This document shows, piece after piece, positions 2,498-36,120 of a DNA stretch of 64,000 nucleotides. Source of the DNA: Schmidtea nova (Eukaryota); NCBI GenBank assembly GCA_044892505.1, contig CM097882.1:429598001-429662000 (forward strand). The letters run 5' to 3'. Made by a program: the position numbers and the translations under genes. The number at the start of each line of letters is the position of its first letter. The stretch's first letter is position 1. The notes below the pieces were generated by a model that searched no databases, was not told where the DNA came from, and saw only the letters and a list, made by a program, of their open reading frames with translations.

Positions 2498-3692
2498 GGT
2501 ATAAGTATACAATAGGGGGGCCACTTTTTTTAATTAAATTAAATAAATTTAAATATATAAATATAAATATAATCAATTAAATTTTAAAATATATCATAAG
2601 CCATGAATTTACAACAAATATATGAACTTTCGCGTGACACACTGTCTTTAATAAGACATTTCCAAAGAGTAGGTTTGCTACGAGCCGATCCCACCTGCTC
2701 AAACTGCGGACGCATTATGAAACTTGTAAAAGATTCAAAAGTAGTAAATGAATATATATTTGTTTGTCGTAGTCGGTCACACGTAAATCCGCATCGCAAC
2801 AAACAAACAATTACAACCGGGAGTTTTTTTTGTAATTCCAAATTACATATTCGTGATCTTTTCCTACTAATGTATTTTTGGGGCGCGGAATGCTCTGTTA
2901 AACAAGTTCAGCTTTTTACTAATATTTCAAAAAAAACTATCATTCAATGGTACCAGTATTTTAGAGATATTGCCAGTTGGAAGTTGGTTTCTCAGCCTTT
3001 ACTATTTGGTGGAGTTGATCATATCGTGCAAGCGGATGAATCGAAATTTATGAATTTGATGCATAATCGCGGAGAACCGAGAGGGAATGCACGCAGTGGT
3101 TGGGTTTTCGGAATTATAGACTGTACTACGAAGAATGTACACTTCGAGTTCGTTTATAATAGGACTCAACAAGAAATATTTCCAATTTTTTCGAGTGTTG
3201 TACTCCCGGGAACGACTATTTGGACTGATGAATTCTCTACTTATACTGGTGGTCCCAGACGAGACCCAAATGCCCCTACACCTTTAGCTAAATTGGGACC
3301 GTATGTACACCAGTGGGTGAATCACTCGGAACACTTCATTGATCCCGTTACCGGCGTTAACACCAACGGAATAGAAGGTTCGTGGGCGTTGTGTAAACGA
3401 AAATTTAAGTATATGTTTGGGACACGATGTAGCTTCATTCCTTCGTACCTCGACGAATTCATGTGGAGAAGAAGGTTTTGTCAAAATGAGCGAGCGTTTG
3501 ATATATTGATTGATCAAATAAGACAACGATATGATTTAAGTGTAACGTTAACTTAAATAAAAACTGACTTAATAGTCTTCCCTATATATAAGTATTTTAT
3601 TATACTCTTTTTATTAAATTAATAATTTATTATAATTTAAAATTTATTTAATTTAATTAAAAAAAGTGGCCCCCCTATTGTATACTTATACC
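2498..3692 (+). mobile_element. Merlin (IS1016-like) DNA transposon, apparently intact
   Basis: ~53-bp perfect TIRs starting GGTATAAG. 8-bp TSD GCTTTTTT at 2490-2497 and 3693-3700. Confidence 0.95.
2603..3556 (+). CDS. Merlin DDE transposase, 317 aa
   Basis: N-terminal Cys motif (CSNC...C). Catalytic motifs VQADESKF, IWTDEFSTY, TNGIEGSW, and YLDEFMWRR. Uninterrupted. Confidence 0.93.
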   Translation: MNLQQIYELSRDTLSLIRHFQRVGLLRADPTCSNCGRIMKLVKDSKVVNEYIFVCRSRSHVNPHRNKQTITTGSFFCNSKLHIRDLFLLMYFWGAECSVKQVQLFTNISKKTIIQWYQYFRDIASWKLVSQPLLFGGVDHIVQADESKFMNLMHNRGEPRGNARSGWVFGIIDCTTKNVHFEFVYNRTQQEIFPIFSSVVLPGTTIWTDEFSTYTGGPRRDPNAPTPLAKLGPYVHQWVNHSEHFIDPVTGVNTNGIEGSWALCKRKFKYMFGTRCSFIPSYLDEFMWRRRFCQNERAFDILIDQIRQRYDLSVTLT

Positions 3693-4787: not shown

Positions 4788-5455
4788 AGTAGGCAGAAGT
4801 GTGCACCATGAGTCATCGCAGAACAAAGGACATGACGTCATCGATGAGTCACCCATACCCCCGATGACTCATCGATGACTCATTTCAAATTTGAATTTTA
4901 TGACGTCATCGATGACTCATTTAAAATTTGAAATTTAAATTTCCAAGGGTCAAATATGGTGAAACCTTCAAACAAGGGTATCATTCGAAAGGTCTTGGAG
5001 AGGTCTATCCAATGGTCATACCCCCGAAAGTGTATGGAGGGTTCTTAACCTTCAAAGGGTCAAAAACCTTCAACCTTTTACAATCCTTATAATATACATA
5101 TCAATCGAAAGGTATTTGAAGGATTCACACAATGGTCATACCTTCGAAGGTCTATGATGGGTGCTCAACCTTCAAAGGGTACAAAACCTTCAAACATTAT
5201 AATATCATTCGAAAGGTAATTGTCAGGTAAGTACAGTGTGTGTGTTACAATCCTTTTTCAAACCTTATAATATACATATCATTCAAAAGGTAATTATCCG
5301 GTAAGTATGGTGTGTATGTGTGTGTGTTATAACTTTTCAACTACTATTTCCTACCCCAATTACAACAAAGACATTGCAATCCATGTGCAACGAAACCAAG
5401 ACTAATCAATTTTATTTATAAATATATTGTTGCGAACGTGTACAAATTTGGTTTC
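4788..5455 (+). repeat. Polinton left TIR (runs into N gap) with TGACGTCA/TGACTCA arrays and tandem subrepeats
   Basis: Diverged inverted copy of 11075-12071. Confidence 0.88.
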
Positions 5456-11074: not shown

Positions 11075-12071
11075 ATCCAAATTTGTACACGTTCGCAACA
11101 ATATATTTATAAATAAAATTGATTAGTCTTGGTTTCGTTGCACATGGATTGCAATGTCCTTGTTTCGTTGCACATGAATTGCAATGTCTTTGTTTCGTTG
11201 CACATGGATTGCAATGTCTTTGTTGTAATTGGGGTAAGAAAAAGTCGTTGAAAAATTATAACACACACATACACATCATACTTACCTTTCGAATGATACG
11301 TATATTATAAGGTTTGAAAAAGGATTGTAACACACACACCGTACTTACCTGACAATTACCTTTCGAATGATATTATAAAGTTTGAAGGTTTGAAAAAGGA
11401 TTGTAACACACACACCGTACTTACCTGACAATTACCTTTCGAATGATATTATAATGTTTGAAGATTTTGTACTCTTTGAAGGTTGAGCACCCACCATAGA
11501 TCTTCGAAGGTATGACCATTGTGTGCACCCTTCAATTACCTTTCGATTGATATGTATATTATAAGGATTGTAAAAGGTTGAAGATTTTTGACCCTTTGAA
11601 GGTTAAGAACTCTCCATACACCTTCGGGGGTAAGACCATCTTACTTACCTCTCAATTACCTTTCGAATGATATGTTTATTATAAGGATTGTAAAAGGTTG
11701 AAGGTTTTTGACCCCTTGAAAGTTAAGAACATTCCATAAACCTTCGAGGGTATGACCATTGGATAGACCTCTCCAAGACCTTTCGAATGATACCCTAGTT
11801 TGAAGGTTTGACCTTATTTGACCTTTGGAAATTTAAATTTAAAATCTGAAATCTGAAATGCGTCATCGATGACGTCATAAAATTCAAATTTGAAACGACT
11901 CATCAATGAGTCATCAATGCAGTCATCGATGAATCATCAATGACGTCATCAATGACGTCATCGACGAGTCATTTGACGAGTCATCGATGAGTCATTGGGG
12001 ATATGGGTGACTAATCGATGACGTCATTTCCTTTGTTCTGGGATGACTCATAGTGCACACTTCTGTCTACT
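11075..12071 (-). repeat. Polinton right TIR, with 3x30-bp tandem repeat (11130-11222) and CRE/AP-1-like arrays
   Basis: Inverted copy of 4788-5455 with extra subrepeat units. Confidence 0.88.
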
Positions 12072-26063: not shown

Positions 26064-27127
26064 TTTTGTTCAAAATAAAATTATCTATATTATATTATCA
26101 TAGTTATTTTTATTTATATATAAAATCTGACTCATAAATATAAAAATATTGAATGCTAAAAGATGCTAGCAAACATGCAATGTTCGTGATTTCACCTTCG
26201 TCCTAATCAATGCTTTTCGTCTCGCTCACCCATGAACTCGCAAATCATCTGAAAATCTCCACCGAAAATTCGTATTGTTGACAATTATAAAAGAAAATAA
26301 TTGCTCCGATATATTAGAAGATATGAAGAAAAGTTAAATTGCAGTTGAACCTCATTCTATCTGAAAGTGTTTAAAAAGTATAAAATTTATTTTATTCCTA
26401 AACTTAATTTCGGTTATGCGAAGCCTTCAGGCGAAGTGTAACGAAAAATTTGAGTGCACTTTGCTTGAAGAATTCGCATACGAATGAAATTTAGCTAGTA
26501 AAGATCCTATCTTCAAAATATTAATACCTAAAAAGTATTGGAATTAGAATAAGTTATGAAAGAAAATTTTCGTTGTTTAGGAATTTTTATATTTTATAAA
26601 TTTTTATTGAATTATTTTATTTTAGCATTTTATTGTTGGGCAAAAACTGCAAAGCAGTAACCCTATAAGTAGAGAGCGCGCAAGATTCAATTTTAACCCA
26701 AACATTCATTAAAGACCGAAGCGATTAATTGAAAAACGCCAAAAAGGTGAAATGGACTCAAGCACATCAACCAGTAGAGAACGCGCTAGCTGTGAATTTG
26801 CAAGTCCTTACACTGAAACCTCAAGAAAAATTAAAAGTCGTCAAAAGAAGAACGTTTGAAAGTTAGAATAGGCAGAAACCCCATTGAAAATGCCCATAAA
26901 GAACAGAATTGTGTCATAAAACTTCAGTGCAGAAAAAATTAACAAAAATTTTAGAAGAAAATTGTGATTTTATCATGAAATTTCACAAAAAAATAAAAAG
27001 AAACAATCTTGATCGAAATATCGCAAATTAAATCAAATTGAATAAATTTTGATTCAAAAATAAAAATTTTGGATTAAAAATAAATTATTTATGGTTTATA
27101 AAAATTATTAAGTAAAAATATTGATTT

Positions 27128-28188
27128 TGTTCGTCTGTGTGCGCAGTACTTTAATTTTGGAAGAGAGAATATTTTGTAGTCTGTGTGCGCGTTGACATTT
27201 TTTGTTATTTTTGATTGCCGGTATCGCGTCTGTGTGCGCCTCACGGTTTTTTTTTGTTTATCGCGTCTGTGTGCGCGTGGGTAATTTTGGTTGTGGTTTT
27301 TGTGAAATTGATTTAATTTTTAGATTTGGTTATTAATTGAATTTCAAAAAAAAAATCCAGTTGTTTAAATATTCCAATAATTGAAAGTTGGGATTTGTTT
27401 TAAAAAGGTGTTAATGGAAGGAATTTTTGGAAGCTTCGATTTAGAATTTATGGATCAAATTATGGCAATGGATAGGTCGACAAGAAAGGCTAAAGATGAT
27501 CATTCAATACAGAATAATAATGATAATAACGCTACGCATATGCAAGGAAGTTCAGAGAATCATTACAATTATTTCAATGACAGCAATAGGGATGTTATGT
27601 CGATGAATATTGATGCTAATTATGCTAATTTCAATATGCCAATGAACATGAATGCAGATTACAGGCCAGATGGATTCGCTAAAGCCTTGTTAGTTACTCC
27701 CAAGCAGGTGGCTGTCAATGCTGCCTTGGATTCTACTAAAATGATTTCTAAATTGCGTGCTTTGCATCATTCTAGCCAACAATTTCCGGATCTAGCATAT
27801 TTCAAATGGTATGGATTAGATTTGACTAACTTCAATGTGCCAAATGACAAAGAAGCTGGAATTTTCGAATCTTCAATGTCGAAAATTAGATCCGATCTTT
27901 CTCATATATCGAGTGATCACATAAACAATATTTCTCGCAAATCAACTGACAACAAGTCCTTAGAAACAATCTCTATCATATATCAGGTGATAAATCTTCT
28001 GATTTCGGTCATTTCGGTCAACAATGAATTGACAAACAAACATTCTCCGTTTGTGCCATCTTTGGACATACTCCGGCGATTGACGGCACAAATGTTGACT
28101 TACTGTGCATTACACGAGTTGAATGGAATTATCAATACTGTTTATTGTGTGAATAAAGATAATATGGACGTTCAATTAATGATTTCCA
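27128..28188 (+). repeat. BEL 5' LTR (1061 bp)
   Basis: Direct repeat of 34382-35441; four GTCTGTGTGCGC motifs in the first 150 bp; AATAAA at 28152. Confidence 0.97.
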
Positions 28189-31100
28189 ATGGTAGCAGAG
28201 CGTGGTTCCCACTGGGGGGCCACGCACACTTTGGAAGTCTGAGAGGAATCCTGTTAGTGTATATTTTTATTAAAAAGCCTAATATGTTTTGCGTAAATTT
28301 TTATAAATGTTTTAAATTTGTAATTGGGGTATGGACCAACATTCCCTCCCAAGCGCGTTTGAAAAGGGAAGTGAAGGTTGGAATGCTTTGGCTACCGGAT
28401 ATTGTGAAAGACGGCTGCTATGGGCCCCAGCATTCTTTTAAATTCCGGGAAAAAATGGTGTCACCTGCTTATGAAGCAACATGTATAGTAAAAGATAATT
28501 CGGTATTTAAAGGTGTAAATGTTAGTAGGTGCATTGGTTATGACAGCGAAGATTTTTCTTTGAATATCAGCCGGGAAATGTTGCAACAAGATAAAATGTT
28601 GAAAGGCTTAGAACCTTTTGTAGGAATAAAGGGAGATAAAAGTAATCATAAAAAGTTCTATAATCAAATTGTTAAAAATATTAAATTGGGTAATCATGAA
28701 AACAGGGCGAATATGAATAAAATAGGGGAATTATTGAGTTTTTATTCAATAGCAAGTGGTGATGAAAAGACAAGTTTAAAGAATAATAGTTCGCGAGTGA
28801 AAGAAAAGAAAATGGAGTCAACTTTACCTTTTGTTTTGCGATTGAGACGTGGAATACAGATTTTTGTTAAGACTCTAACAGGTAAAACCATAACACTGGA
28901 AGTTGAACCGAGGGACTCTATTGAGAAAATAAAAGCAAGGATCCAAGAGAAAGAGGGAATCCCGCCTGATCAACAGAGATTGATATTTGCAGGTAAACAA
29001 TTGGTAGGCGAAAGAATCCTGTCAGACTACCACATTCTAAAGGGGTCTACTATTCATCTGGCACTGAGATTGTGTGGAGGGAATGATGAAGAGGAGGAAT
29101 TAGAGGAAGGATTGAGAAAGAAGAGGAGTGTCAAATATAGATTGACGAAATTAAGAAACAGATGGATAAATGATATGTTGGCAGAAAATGCAACACATGT
29201 CCTTGATGAATATCAGGAAGCTATGGAAAGTGCCATAGAGAGTTTTGAAAGATTGGTGGATATTAGTAAAAGATTAGGAAGGGCAGATACAACATCGGGG
29301 CTAGAAGCGGATTTACAAGAGATAGAAAATAAGAACGAGAAGGTGGAAGAGTTGATTTCGTCAAAGGCCAATCAGTCTGTTAGGTCGGATGACAGTAATA
29401 CAATTAAAGAGGTAAATGGAAACGAAACGAAGAAAAGACTAGAAAAGATGCAGAAGATACGGATCCAGATATTTGATGGACACCAGAAAGAATATGAAAG
29501 TTGGAAAGCTGCTTTCCATACTTGTGTTGATAGTGCCCATGGAGATGATGATGAAAAGATGTTACACCTTCGATCCTATCTGAAAGGTGAACCGCTAAGG
29601 CTGATCGAAAATTTAGGATTTTCTGCAACGGGTTATAAAATGGCAAAAGAAAAGCTTGATAAAAGATATGGCGGGGAAGAACGAAATTACTTAGCTGCTC
29701 TGGAAGATATCGACAGGTTCCGACCCGTTCGGGAGAATGAAATGCTGGAAATAGAGGCATTTGTTGGACTATTGGAAACGCTAGAAGTTAGAATTATTAA
29801 TAATAGACGAGAGGGCGAAATGAACAACAGTTACTTATTGAAGAGATGCCTGCAAAAGCTACCCAGCTCGCTGCTATACAAGTGGAAGAAAGATTTTAAG
29901 GAGGGAAAGGTAACCGAATGTATCCAAGATTTGAGAAATTGGTTACAAGATGAAGTCGAGCTGTTAAGATCCACAAGAGAAACCCTTTATGGAGTCGGTG
30001 ATGGCAATAGAAGAAACGATTGGAAGAGGCAGGATGGACCGTCAAGAGAATTTGGGAATCTAAGGCAAGGGAACCGGACACTTGTTGGGCAAGTAGCAGA
30101 TTGGAAGGAAGACAAGACAAACATACCAAGAGACGGATTGTTGAGCACAAAGTTGAAGTGTTGGAAATGCAAGGAAAATCATTACTTGGATCAATGCAGA
30201 GAATTCAAAGAAATGAACCCCGCAATGCGGCGTAAAGCAGTAGGAGACTGGAAGTTATGCTTTAATTGTTTAAAGTCTAATCATGTAGCGTCGGAATGTC
30301 GAAAGGCTTCATTCTGTACTAGAGAGGGGTGTAAGTTGAAACACAGTAACCTACTGCATGTGGATCAGTCAGAGTCCAAAAGGAAGGAAAACACATTGAT
30401 GTCGGCTACTAAAGATGAATTATTAAAAAAGGAGCGAAAATACCTAAGCTTGAGGACCATACCGATCTACCTTGAGCATGGAGCGAAGAAAATTAAAGTA
30501 AATGCGCTGTTAGACGATGCAAGCTCCATTAGCTACATAAGTCAGAGTATTGCAGACGAGTTGGGTCTAAAGGGGAAAGAGGAAATAGTTCCTGTGAGCG
30601 TCATCGGAGGTCATATTCAAAATATGACAACAAGAATAGTCACGATGACGTTGATAAGTCATGATCAGAAGATGAGGAAAAAGTTTACAGCTGCAGCGGT
30701 GAAGAGTGTAACCGGGGAAATGCGAGTGATAAATTGGGCAAAGGAAAAATGGCAATGGGAGCACTTAAAGGATATTCGATTTCCAATGCTTGACGAACGA
30801 CAGGTTGTGCATGTTCTTATCGGAGCCGATTATTTAGGGTTGCAAAGAGCGTTGAAGGAAGTGGATGGGAAGATGGACGAACCAATCGCTAGATTAACTC
30901 CGCTTGGTTGGACCTGTGTAGGTGGAAATACGTTGGGCGTGTCATTGACCCACCAAACCAACTTTGTTCAAACGTATTTATCCAAGGACGAGGAGTTAGT
31001 TGGACAGGTAAAGTTGTTCTGGGAAATCGAGAACTTAAAGGAGAACCCGGCGCTCTTGACCAAAAGGGATCGTGAAGTTATTAAAATTACGGAAGAAAAG

Positions 31101-31349
31101 ATGGTTAACAGAGGAATGTTTTATCAAGTGAGTTTACCGTGGAAATCTGGAAAAGAAGAATTATCAAATAATACGCAAATGGCAATGAAACGCCTAGAAA
31201 GTTTAAAGCAAAAATTAGATAAAGATCAAGAGCTGAAGAAGGAATATGAAAGAATTTTGAAGGATCATGAAAGTAAGGATTACATTAGGAGGTTAAGCGA
31301 ACAAGAAAAGGTGGGAACGAAGTGGATGTTACCTCATTTTCCCATTTAA
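27414..31349 (+). CDS. LTR-encoded unknown domain + ubiquitin-like domain + Gag + protease
   Basis: One open frame from ATG 27414. Gag [16 protein letters not shown]; knuckles [42 protein letters not shown]; protease [12 protein letters not shown]. Confidence 0.85.
28190..28207 (+). promoter_or_regulatory. Primer-binding site, initiator tRNA-Met type
   Basis: TGGTAGCAGAGCGTGGTT, 1 nt after the LTR; complementary to an ...CTCTGCTACCA 3' end. Confidence 0.85.
28854..29081 (+). other. Ubiquitin-like domain inside the BEL polyprotein
   Basis: [19 protein letters not shown]...LRLCGG; 59/76 identical to canonical ubiquitin by manual count. Preceded by [13 protein letters not shown], the tail of a previous ubiquitin unit. 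Confidence 0.95.
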
Positions 31350-34345
31350 GAAAGGAAAAAGAAATATCGAAAGTCCGGATTGTATTTGATGCTGCAGCAA
31401 AATGTAATGGAAAGTGTTTGAATGATGTTTTGGAAACGGGACCGAAATTGCAAAATGATCTTTTCGAAATTTTGTTAAGATTCAGACGGTTTAAGGTAGC
31501 CATAGTAAGCGATATCGCCGAAATGTATCTACAAATAAGAGTAGCGGAAGAAGACAGACCTTACTTACGATTTTTGTGGAAAGAGGGTGAGAAGAGTGTG
31601 CAATTTGAATTTTCAAGACTAGTTTTCGGGTTGAATACGTCCCCGTTTCTTGCACAATATGTAACCCAACAACACGCGAGAAGATATGAAAAAAGTTACG
31701 CAAGAGCGGCTGAGACCATAATAAAATCTACATACATGGATGACAGCATTGACTCAGTAGAGACGGAGGAAGAAGCGCTAATTCTTAAAGAGGATCTGAA
31801 GTTACTGTGGGCAGAAGCAGGAATGAGGGCAAGAAAGTGGATGTCAAACTTGATTAAAGTAATGGAAACAATTCCGATCGAAGAACAAGCCAAGTCGTTA
31901 ACAATAGAAGAAAATAGAACAGTCACGATGAAGACATTTGGGATGTACTGGCTCGCAACGGACGATTTATTGAGATTTGAAGGACGAACGGCAGACAATG
32001 TGAAAATCACGAAAAGAATGTTATTAAGTTGGATAGCACGTATCTTTGATCCTTTGGGAATGCTTAGTGCATTCACAATTATTGGCAAATGCCTAATGCA
32101 AGAAGCGTGGATGATGGGAAGTAAGTGGGATGATGTTTTACCCCCAGAATTACAAAAAAGAGCGAGATGTTGGATGGAAGAATGTGAATTATTGAATCGA
32201 GTAATGATTCCAAGGAGATTATTGGGGAAGCAAAGCAACCCGTGGCGCTTACATGTATTTGTTGATGCGTCTAGTACTGCCTATGCAGCGGTTTGTTACC
32301 TTAGGGAAGAAGAGAGCGCCAAGGTTAAAATGAAATTTGTTGCGGCACGAGCAAAAGTAGCTCCAGTTAAAGTAATTAGCATTCCACGATTGGAATTGAT
32401 GGGCGCCTGTTTGGGTCTAAAGTTAGCTAAGAAAGTTGGAAAGGCGTTACAATATGAATTGAAAAATGTCATGTTTTGGACTGATAGTCAAGATACCTTG
32501 CACTGGATTCGTCATCATTCAAGACTATGGAAAACATTTGTTGCCAACCGAGTGAGTACCATTCAGAACGAGACAGATGCTGAACAATGGCGTTACGTTC
32601 CTACTAAGAGCAACCCAGCAGATATAGCCACTCGGGGAATGTCGGCATCAGATCATATAGGAGATAATATGTGGTGGGAAGGACCACCTTTTTTAAAACA
32701 CTTTGAAAGAAATTGGCCAAAAACGAAATTAGATATACAGGTAAATGAAAATAGAGAAAGAAAGCAAGCGACATTTGTCATAAATTTAGAAGAAGAGCAA
32801 CCTGGAAAATATCAAGTAAACTGTTGGCAACCTGAAACCTATTCAGCGTGGAAAAGATTGCTCAGAGTAAGAGCATGGGTGCATAGATTCGCAAATAATT
32901 GTCGAAACAAAAAGGAACTCCGAAGTGGGGAGTTAACAACCGACGAAATCAAAAAGATTGAAACGATAGTAATTCGAGAGGAGCAAAATGAGATCTTTAA
33001 GGATGAGATACGAGAGTTAAAAGACGGAAGACCATTGTATAAAAAGAGCAAAATACTGAGTTTGAATCCAATGCTCGATGAAGAAGGATTACTCAGGAGT
33101 AACAGTCGAATCATAAATGCAGAGTTCATGACATTAGAAGCAAGATACCCGATAATATTAAGTGCAAAACGATGGGTGACTAGACTGATAATAAGAAAAT
33201 ATCATCAAGACAGAGATCACTGCGCCGGAACAAATCATTTATTAAGCGATCTGCAGGAAAGGTTTTGGATAACGCAACCTAAAAGAGAAATCAAGAAGGT
33301 GGAATTTGAATGCCTAATCTGTAAAAAGAGACGAGCTTCTGGACGGTCCCAGAAGATGGCTCCACTACCTGCATTTCGATTGACGGAACCATTTAGACCA
33401 TTTGGAAAAGTGGGGGTTGATTTTGCGGGCCCATTCTTAACAATCCAGGGCCGAGGAAAAGCGAGGCTAAAGAGATATGTGTGTTTGTTTACATGTTTAC
33501 AAACTAGAGCAGTGCATCTGGAATTAGTGTACGGACTAACAACGGATTCATTCATACAAGCTTTAATAAGATTCATTGGGCGACGAGGAAAACCAGTGTT
33601 GATGTTATCAGACAACGGTACTAATTTCGTGGGAGCAACGGGGGAATTGAAAGATGTGATACTCGATGGTTATAAGATAACGAAGGAGTTGACAGCTCGG
33701 GAGATAAGATGGGTGTTTAATCCGCCAGCCGGGCCACATTTCGGAGGGGTTTATGAAGCGTTAATAAAATCGATGAAAAGAGCTGTGTCAGCAATAGTGG
33801 GTAATGCGGATATTACAGATGAAGAGATGCTGACAGTAGTAGCACGGATTGAAGGATTTTTGAATGCCAGACCGTTGACGACAAAAGGGGATGATGAAAA
33901 AGGACTTGAAGTACTGACACCTAACCATTTTTTAATACCCAGATGGTCAGAAATCGAGGCTAATGAAATAGAAACTAATAAGAAAATTAATATTCAGCGA
34001 CGATGGAAAAGGACGGTAGAGTTAACCAATCAAGTATGGAATAGATGGAAAAGAGAACTTGTGCCGATATGGATAAGCAGAGCCAAGTGGAGATCAGATC
34101 AAGAAGAGTTAATAACAGGTCAGTTAGTGTGGATTTTAGATAAAGAAAGCGAAAGTGTTGGAGAATGGCCATTGGGGAAGATCACAGAGTTAATGATGGG
34201 AAGCGATGGACGGACACGGGTAGTAAAGATGTGGAGTAAAGGGAAAGAGGTGATCCGTCCAATATCTCAGCTTTGCCCCTTGGAAGTAGAAGCAGAGAAG
34301 CAAGAAAATTTTAAAGAAAAAAAGGGGTTGGCGGAAAAGGAGTAA
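31322..34345 (+). CDS. BEL Pol: RT, RNase H, integrase (-1 frame relative to the upstream ORF)
   Basis: [68 protein letters not shown]. Confidence 0.95.
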
Positions 34346-34368
34346 ACAAGGAGAGTTGACGAGGAGTC

Positions 34369-34381
34369 AAAAGGGGGGGAA
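34369..34381 (+). promoter_or_regulatory. Polypurine tract
   Basis: Purine run immediately before the TG of the 3' LTR. Confidence 0.9.
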
Positions 34382-35441
34382 TGTTCGTCTGTGTGCGCAG
34401 TACTTTAATTTTGGAAGAGAGAATATTTTGTAGTCTGTGTGCGCGTTGACATTTTTTGTTATTTTTGATTGCCGGTATCGCGTCTGTGTGCGCCTCACGG
34501 TTTTTTTTGTTTATCGCGTCTGTGTGCGCGTGGGTAATTTTGGTTGTGGTTTTTGTGAAATTGATTTAATTTTTAGATTTGGTTATTAATTGAATTTCAA
34601 AAAAAAAATCCAGTTGTTTAAATATTCCAATAATTGAAAGTTGGGATTTGTTTTAAAAAGGTGTTAATGGAAGGAATTTTTGGAAGCTTCGATTTAGAAT
34701 TTATGGATCAAATTATGGCAATGGATAGGTCGACAAGAAAGGCTAAAGATGATCATTCAATACAGAATAATAATGATAATAACGCTACGCATATGCAAGG
34801 AAGTTCAGAGAATCATTACAATTATTTCAATGACAGCAATAGGGATGTTATGTCGATGAATATTGATGCTAATTATGCTAATTTCAATATGCCAATGAAC
34901 ATGAATGCAGATTACAGGCCAGATGGATTCGCTAAAGCCTTGTTAGTTACTCCCAAGCAGGTGGCTGTCAATGCTGCCTTGGATTCTACTAAAATGATTT
35001 CTAAATTGCGTGCTTTGCATCATTCTAGCCAACAATTTCCGGATCTAGCATATTTCAAATGGTATGGATTAGATTTGACTAACTTCAATGTGCCAAATGA
35101 CAAAGAAGCTGGAATTTTCGAATCTTCAATGTCGAAAATTAGATCCGATCTTTCTCATATATCGAGTGATCACATAAACAATATTTCTCGCAAATCAACT
35201 GACAACAAGTCCTTAGAAACAATCTCTATCATATATCAGGTGATAAATCTTCTGATTTCGGTCAATTCGGTCAACAATGAATTGACAAACAAACATTCTC
35301 CGTTTGTGCCATCTTTGGACATACTCCGGCGATTGACGGCACAAATGTTGACTTACTGTGCATTACACGAGTTGAATGGAATTATCAATACTGTTTATTG
35401 TGTAAATAAAGATAATATGGACGTTCAATTAATGATTTCCA
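34382..35441 (+). repeat. BEL 3' LTR (1060 bp) with the same open frame (ATG 34667, stop at 35467 in flanking DNA)
   Basis: Direct repeat of the 5' LTR. Confidence 0.97.
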
Positions 35442-36120
35442 GATTTAATTCGGCGAAAAATTATTAGAATTAATTTCGAGAAATTAAAAAGAATATTCTA
35501 GAACAATTTGTTTTACTGCATTAGTTATGGTAACGCAAAATCGATGGTATATATACCGCCATCAAAATGGCAAGAATCAGAATTTTTGTGGAAATTTTTC
35601 TTGTGGTGGAATTTGTGTGAGAATTTTTCTAAGAATTTCAGAAAATTTTGTGTCGGAGCTTTTGTCTCAAAATCTTTGTGAAAGAATTGAATTTCAGAGA
35701 ATTTTGTGTAGAAGAATTTGTGAAAGAATTTGGTGAAATTTTGCGAGAGAATTTTCCTACGAATTTTCTAAGAATTTTTTTTTGAATTGCGCAGATTGGA
35801 GAAAATTCCTGAAGAAAGTAATAAAAACGATGTAAGAATTTTTTGTTATTTTTTTTTTGGCTTGGGATCATCGATCATCATGCCTGACGATTATCCCATG
35901 CCTCGCGTTTTGTTTATATTATTTTATTCTAATTTATTTATTTTATTCTTGATGATAAGGTATAATTGTATTATTCTTTTATATGGGGAAAAATATTAAT
36001 CATATTTTAATTGATTTTGTTTTTAATTTTTGTCTTTGTCACAAATTTCCCAATTAAATAAAATCCTATTTTAATATATATATCTAAGTAAAAATAAAAA
36101 TTTTTTTTTCTCCACACAAT

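Follow-up and report, generated by a model that had tools for sequence, protein, structure and literature searches.

Why should a long terminal repeat (LTR) retrotransposon carry ubiquitin (Ub) directly in front of its capsid gene, and does the element make use of it? The question is raised by a 64,000-nucleotide stretch of the Schmidtea nova genome (assembly GCA_044892505.1, contig CM097882.1, positions 429,598,001 to 429,662,000; hereafter the window), in which a complete BEL/Pao LTR retrotransposon (Belpaoviridae) at 27128-35441 encodes a Ub unit fused to the start of Gag. Coordinates of this element are positions in the whole window, and all of its features lie on the forward strand. A sequence-only reading of the locus had described a captured polyubiquitin fragment, one partial and one whole unit, in frame directly upstream of BEL Gag; Pfam, matches to PDB chains, and translation of the frame all agree with this description. 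With a probability of roughly 0.6, we read the Ub as a processing module that would be cut by host deubiquitinases, freeing Gag near its ancestral N-terminus.

The captured fragment (28812-28853 for its partial unit) opens with a Met codon at 28812-28814, followed by a 13-residue C-terminal Ub tail at 28815-28853 that ends in RG, not GG. This tail is less than a whole Ub monomer; in polyubiquitin chains its counterpart is residues 64-76 of the unit before, and it joins residue 1 of the next unit without a spacer, in the head-to-tail format. The unit that follows is complete, with 76 residues ending LRLCGG (28854-29081), as seen from Pfam, solved Ub chains, an identity count, and a modelled Ub fold. 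An Asn codon (29082-29084) comes directly after it, then an acidic stretch and Gag. The G75-G76/Asn junction (29076-29084), which we aligned in nine lineages, is the predicted deubiquitinase cleavage site.

The identity of the domain is clear from several comparisons. Pfam “ubiquitin” (PF00240) matches with an E value of 3.7e-26 (91.1 bits versus a curated cut-off of 25.4), and solved Ub chains match with E values of about 1e-33. Because the best of these alignments span the Ub-Ub junction of polyubiquitin, the source was polyubiquitin, probably as a transcript, and not a Ub-ribosomal fusion gene. Identity to canonical Ub, for which the reference unit was drawn from the polyubiquitins returned by database searches, is 59/76, in agreement with the divergence of 22% given earlier. 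The same alignment recovers the individual residues that had been listed (L8, I44, K48, and K63 kept; V70 changed to Ala and R74 to Cys) and adds changes of M1 to Ile and K29 to Arg; within the tail, L71, R72, L73, G75, and G76 are retained. A structure model based on a five-row alignment has a predicted local distance difference test score (pLDDT) of about 88-90 across the domain. Its best Foldseek matches in the PDB are ubiquitin, with target-normalised template modelling (TM) scores of 0.92-0.97 and root mean square deviations of 0.5-1.4 Å. As modelled, the window domain has the beta-grasp fold, with a disordered tail and junction. Single-sequence structure prediction of the Ub together with the Gag N-terminus was uninformative (pLDDT, 45.6).

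Is the fusion peculiar to this copy? With Gag alone as the query, HMMER recovered 9117 relatives at E<=1e-3 from 1.84 billion representative proteins, and we scored the presence of Ub among the Gag matches that reached the very start of Gag and had residues upstream. Besides the window, eight lineages have a Ub or Ub-like domain whose end coincides with this Gag junction. In six of these (P0199/L002, P0189/L003, P0217/L004, P0133/L007, P0173/L009, and P0132) the domain is complete up to that junction, and the 76-residue unit abuts the Gag N-terminus as it does in the window. In L001/P0121, whose contig ends within the domain, the C-terminal half is present and contains one in-frame stop, and L008/P0153 has a tail remnant of Ub only. 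The L008 element also has CCCH zinc fingers where the others have knuckles of the CCHC type, and it ends in a CFAP58-like coiled coil; it is either a further mosaic of host-derived pieces or a contig of chimeric origin.

Gag of the Ub-bearing lineages is 26-56% identical to that of the window. As the fusion is shared by eight or more elements that are only distantly related, we regard it as an old, selected feature. This distribution also bears on the idea that the locus arose through misassembly or through the chance joining of a polyubiquitin pseudogene to a transposon. We found no points in favour of that idea, and it conflicts both with the continuous frame inside an element that has near-identical LTRs and a target duplication at its borders and with the recurrence of the same fusion in independent assemblies of six samples and in one database protein; we give it virtually no credence. 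The samples are ERZ2272577, ERZ2271731, ERZ27314303, ERZ5540424, JGI 3300013315, and JGI 3300033082. Other searches returned fewer relatives. A homology search with Gag found 11, none annotated with Ub; a search with the N-terminal extension plus Ub was dominated by long polyubiquitins and was uninformative on the element; a metagenome scan with the Gag alignment found one distant, degraded BEL element without Ub; and a viral-contig scan gave no match.

The residues held across these lineages show what has been kept. L73 and G76 are invariant in all nine lineages and G75 is present in eight, and at 13 positions the canonical residue is held in all seven full domains; we take most of these 13 to be Ub fold core, with the remainder in the tail. 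When Ub and Gag are compared over identical element pairs, non-synonymous differences are 0.18-0.29 and 0.50-0.53, respectively, with synonymous sites saturated in both. Protein-level change is thus two to three times slower in Ub than in Gag, and from this lower non-synonymous difference we conclude that Ub is under stronger constraint than the neighbouring capsid gene. The sequence-only reading had already proposed retention under selection, arguing from 22% divergence without stops. The proposal held up, although that argument is weak by itself and the case is carried by the cross-lineage comparison: the domain is neither confined to this copy nor decaying neutrally, since eight other lineages carry it with a conserved tail.

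These observations count against a neutral passenger, that is, a sequence captured by template switching and kept, without function, only as an in-frame link between the start codon and Gag. The neighbouring leader does seem to be kept in just this way, being open and poorly conserved between lineages. Furthermore, Met stands right after GG in two relatives, a stop falls inside the Ub-like part of one, and the closest relative is one Gly short. Selection on the frame alone, however, would not hold 13 canonical positions in seven of seven domains, preserve the LxLxGG tail, and keep the rate two to three times below that of Gag, and we consider a passenger quite improbable.

A functional Ub need not be a cleaved one. 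Conceivably, it stays on Gag as a handle for Ub receptors (the proteasome, shuttle factors, p97, or ESCRT) or as a fusion degron governing Gag turnover or localisation. Some of the residues are in keeping with such a role: among the full domains, K11 and K27 are kept in 7/7 and K48 in 6/7, and position 44 is hydrophobic in 6/7. The Ddi1 family also provides cellular proteins that join a Ub-like domain to a retropepsin-type protease. An uncleaved handle, however, has no need of G75-G76, and these are the residues that persist (in eight and nine of the nine lineages, respectively) even where little else of the domain can be recognised. K63, R72, and R74, moreover, vary among the relatives, and cells generally cleave linear Ub fusions whose GG is intact. 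We therefore judge permanent retention on Gag to be unlikely, if somewhat less so than a passenger without function.

Cleavage by deubiquitinases would account better for the pattern as a whole. The residue following GG across the nine lineages is N, S, S, S, G, M, M, S, and N, and never Pro. A conserved fold and LxLxGG tail, no Pro next to them, and variable lysines, R72, and R74 would correspond to what a deubiquitinase substrate needs, beyond the needs of a passive spacer. The same comparison does not favour an additional proposal of the sequence-only reading, in which Asn exposed by the cut may set the half-life of Gag through the N-degron pathway. Asn is found only in the window and in its closest relative, P0132; the other lineages have Ser (four), Met (two), or Gly (one), so Asn after GG is at most a local feature of the window copy.

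How many times was Ub captured? Several related elements in different hosts might each have taken up Ub (and HSP90) from abundant, co-packaged stress mRNAs, with the architecture arising by convergence. Synonymous sites between the Ub domains of different lineages are fully saturated, as such a history would allow, and the HSP90 pieces found upstream of Ub in the window and in L002 are adjacent pieces without significant overlap, joined to Ub at different residues. Against this stand the same Ub-Gag junction in all lineages and a set of shared non-canonical states: L67I in 6/7 full domains, E64G in 4/7, loss of M1 in 6/7, and S20R, common only to the window and its closest relative. The Ub-bearing lineages also cluster on Gag. 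In a Gag tree made without Ub from the 14 lineages with a known N-terminus, which is unrooted, the 9 Ub-bearing lineages split from the 5 Ub-less ones in 495/500 bootstraps. An earlier neighbour-joining tree of 131 Gag cores was dropped, its distances being saturated and the N-terminus being known for a minority of its members.

The Ub-less relatives may indicate what the junction looked like before the fusion. L010 (the bivalve Mya arenaria, GCA_026914265.1, CP111020.1) and L011 start Gag with Met and an acidic leader and have stops in all frames just upstream of Gag; at the same Gag start, the Ub-bearing elements show GG, then Met, Asn, or Ser and an acidic leader. The Gag Met of L010 lies about 136 bases past a primer-binding 16-mer that it shares with the window. 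Together, the identical junction, the shared non-canonical residues, the Gag starts of the Ub-less elements, and the split in the Gag tree point to a single origin and are consistent with one gain, and we think repeated capture a poor prospect by comparison.

The Ub in the window is preceded by a long open frame. The first ATG of the LTR (27414-27416) is the presumed start of the polyprotein frame, as no ATG occurs in any frame within 27128-27413. A TATA-like TTTAAATA lies at 27364, 50 bases ahead of this ATG, and the sole AATAAA in the LTR is at 28152, near the LTR end. From the ATG, an N-terminal extension of 466 codons (27414-28811) runs in frame with Ub and Gag, staying open through the LTR end and the primer-binding site. 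It has 0 stops versus 42 and 51 in the other two frames, was open in 0/20000 shuffles, and has the highest codon-usage score of the three frames in every segment, weakly so in the two segments without homology. From these features, we infer that the long frame is translated from the LTR ATG.

Two parts of this leader derive from chaperone genes. Inside the LTR, a fragment of the C-terminal equatorial part of CCT1 (TCP-1 alpha) occupies 27675-27893, and is repeated in the 3' LTR at 34928-35146. It matches residues 430-513 of T-complex protein 1 subunit alpha in the PDB (E, 3e-15) and Pfam Cpn60_TCP1, and it is 77% identical over 73 residues to the genuine CCT1 of another organism (P0283), with third codon positions random. 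An HSP90 middle-domain fragment (28539-28808) adjoins the Ub tail on its upstream side; it matches residues 389-487 of HSP90-alpha (human numbering) in the PDB with one 9-residue gap (E, 1e-20) and Pfam HSP90 (E, 4e-17). The Ub, HSP90, and CCT1 fragments of the window are all sense-oriented and in frame. The frame open upstream to the first LTR ATG, with HSP90 and CCT1 fragments in the leader, is new here.

One relative shares part of this arrangement. L002 (500-705) also has an HSP90 piece directly upstream of Ub, covering residues 487-555. The two pieces are adjacent in HSP90, each joins Ub at a different residue, and direct comparison of the two regions gave no significant similarity (E, 0.4). 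The placement of HSP90 next to Ub in both elements could reflect either shared descent with deletions or a second capture. A phmmer search with the window leader found no relative, and the leader is poorly conserved between lineages. No match came from a Pfam scan of the unmatched parts of the extension and of the relatives' upstream regions, and no known domains were found in the long N-terminal regions of other BEL Gag proteins. The LTR was also searched for a canonical heat-shock element, as a sign of capture at times of stress, and none was found.

Taking the anatomy, the distribution, and the constraint together, we propose the following sequence of events. A BEL/Pao clade would long ago have acquired a piece of host polyubiquitin mRNA, set in frame such that G76 of the complete monomer stood against the ancestral first residue of Gag. 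Translation of the long frame would begin at the ATG inside the LTR. Host deubiquitinases would then recognise the folded Ub and cut after GG, freeing Gag and everything downstream with roughly its original N-terminus and leaving the translated leader on the N-terminal side of Ub; at the upstream RG there would plausibly be no cleavage. Given the placement of G76, a cut there would restore a near-native Gag. As most lineages have lost M1, Ub evidently lies inside a longer product, and a cut would therefore also remove the leader. If Ub insulates Gag from upstream sequence in this manner, the leader need only stay in frame, and being otherwise free, it could hold a patchwork of host mRNA fragments such as HSP90 and CCT1.

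Several observations weigh against this proposal. The window has Cys at position 74, substitutions at R72 or R74 occur among the relatives, and GG is replaced by EG in the closest one. Met follows GG in two lineages, so Gag could start there without Ub. In L004 (263-380), L007 (1-78), and L009 (1-207), the sequence that separates the Ub-like domain from the nearest upstream stop contains no ATG in frame, and position 1 of the domain is Ile or Ser in all three; relatives other than L002 have upstream frames that are short or interrupted. The fusion relatives are short metagenome contigs, some of them clearly dead copies. With respect to a single capture, saturated synonymous sites with few amino acid changes are also expected from separate captures in different hosts, and for this reason the rate comparison is not decisive on the number of captures. 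The case for a single capture rests on the shared derived residues and the junction.

A more far-reaching version of the proposal may also be considered. The whole clade might use captured Ub as a host-operated cleavage cassette that uncouples Gag from an LTR-started leader, with the leader acting as a freely evolving trap for host mRNA fragments. In such a scheme, the HSP90 and CCT1 pieces, released as leader-Ub with a free GG end, could themselves be functional; decoys for chaperones and a conjugatable tag are two examples. We offer this extended version tentatively and think it doubtful.

Among known systems, the cellular Ub-fusion genes (polyubiquitin, Ub-eL40, and Ub-eS31) place Ub N-terminal to a cargo and have it removed by deubiquitinases, giving the cargo a defined N-terminus. 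The elements described here likewise encode Ub N-terminal to a cargo. In the cellular genes, however, Ub begins the protein with its own Met, whereas Met1 is lost in 6/7 full domains of the elements, and the window Ub is internal, following the 466-residue leader and the 14 residues of Met and partial Ub tail. LTR retroelements are also known to take up pieces of host genes, as in maize Bs1 and in retroviral oncogene capture, and such events are usually private to one defective element. As in those cases, what are probably host mRNA pieces lie between the LTRs, in the sense orientation and in frame with gag, and several unrelated host genes are represented in one element. The window element differs in keeping all of its own genes, and its Ub piece is conserved across a deep clade. 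A looser likeness is to Ddi1-type proteins and viral ubiquitins, in which a Ub-type domain is tied to retroelement-like or viral proteins; Ddi1, however, is encoded by a cellular gene and its Ub-like domain lacks a GG junction that could be cleaved, and the ubiquitins of baculoviruses and entomopoxviruses are separate genes, unfused to a capsid protein.

A precedent comes from pestiviruses: cellular Ub inserted into their polyproteins, as whole monomers preceded by a fragment of 14 residues, is a substrate of cellular Ub C-terminal hydrolases (PMC5381556). Efficient processing there needs a whole monomer, and Pro after Ub blocks cleavage (PMC5381556). Like the insertions of cytopathic pestiviruses, the window fusion has a partial unit (14 residues there, 13 here) ahead of whole Ub from polyubiquitin mRNA, and in both cases, the insert keeps the reading frame and immediately precedes the protein whose release is at issue (PMC5381556). 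The pestivirus cases are sporadic, recent recombinants of an RNA virus tied to disease biotype, whereas the fusion described here, known from its sequence, sits before Gag in an LTR retrotransposon and is old, clade wide, and under purifying selection. To our knowledge, none of the compared systems has an old, clade-wide, selected Ub directly before a retrotransposon Gag. A full-text literature search found no published description of a Ub-Gag fusion, which is no proof that none exists.

Apart from the fusion, the window element has the expected anatomy of its family and is a young, nearly intact member of the clade. A GATTT target-site duplication flanks it at 27123-27127 and 35442-35446, as read from the sequence and checked by script. 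The 5' LTR (27128-28188; 1061 bp, with TG..CA ends) and the 3' LTR (34382-35441; 1060 bp) are 99.7% identical by blastn of the element against the window, differing by 2 mismatches and 1 gap column. The 3' LTR repeats the frame start and the CCT1 fragment, and the 258 LTR-borne codons differ by one amino acid between the two copies. The primer-binding site (28190-28207) begins with TGG one base past the 5' LTR, and a 16-mer of it is also found upstream of Gag in relatives L004 and L010; a polypurine tract (34368-34381) adjoins the 3' LTR. Both of these sites were identified by reading the sequence.

Gag (29082-30413) comprises an acidic N-terminus, a coiled-coil region, a DUF1759 core, and zinc knuckles, as recognised from Pfam DUF1759 and from similarity to P0121. 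The whole gag-pol coding region (27414-34345) encodes, in this order, the extension, Ub, Gag, protease, reverse transcriptase, the Pao “Peptidase_A17” region, integrase, and DUF5641, with Pfam matches to its domains. The reading frame changes once along the region, and no in-frame stops occur; the P0121 polyprotein, which has the same domains and is 42% identical to the window over Gag-protease, reads the corresponding region as a single frame of 1774 residues. Four copies of a 13-nt GC-rich motif, CGTCTGTGTGCGC, spaced 37-49 bp apart, lie at the start of the LTR (presumed U3; 27132-27276 and, in the 3' LTR, 34386-34529). The motif has 8 matches in the window, all within the two LTRs, versus 0.01 expected by chance, and the copies may be candidate regulatory repeats.

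Elsewhere in the window, a 317-residue open reading frame at 2603-3556 has an ISXO2/IS1595-like DDE transposase domain (Pfam E, 1.7e-13) and, judged on this domain, is probably a Merlin-type DNA transposon; comparison of this frame with solved structures gave no match. A large DNA transposon may have its ends in two sets of short arrays, built on a palindromic unit, that stand in opposite sense about 7 kb apart (4864-4937 and 11840-11995). The interval between them, which includes 11126-11792, contains four N runs as well as satellite-like arrays of 30, 76, and 120 bp.

Until now, Ub as a processing signal has been a matter of a few RNA-virus recombinants and of cellular fusion genes, and host capture by LTR elements has consisted mostly of private accidents. 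What is new is that a capture became a conserved part of the Gag gene in a deep retrotransposon clade. The constraint on the fold and on the LxLxGG tail suggests that the host deubiquitinase system is a partner the element cannot do without, which would make this a natural example of a retroelement outsourcing polyprotein cleavage to its host. The fusion also offers a way to ask how translated retroelement leaders pick up host coding sequence.

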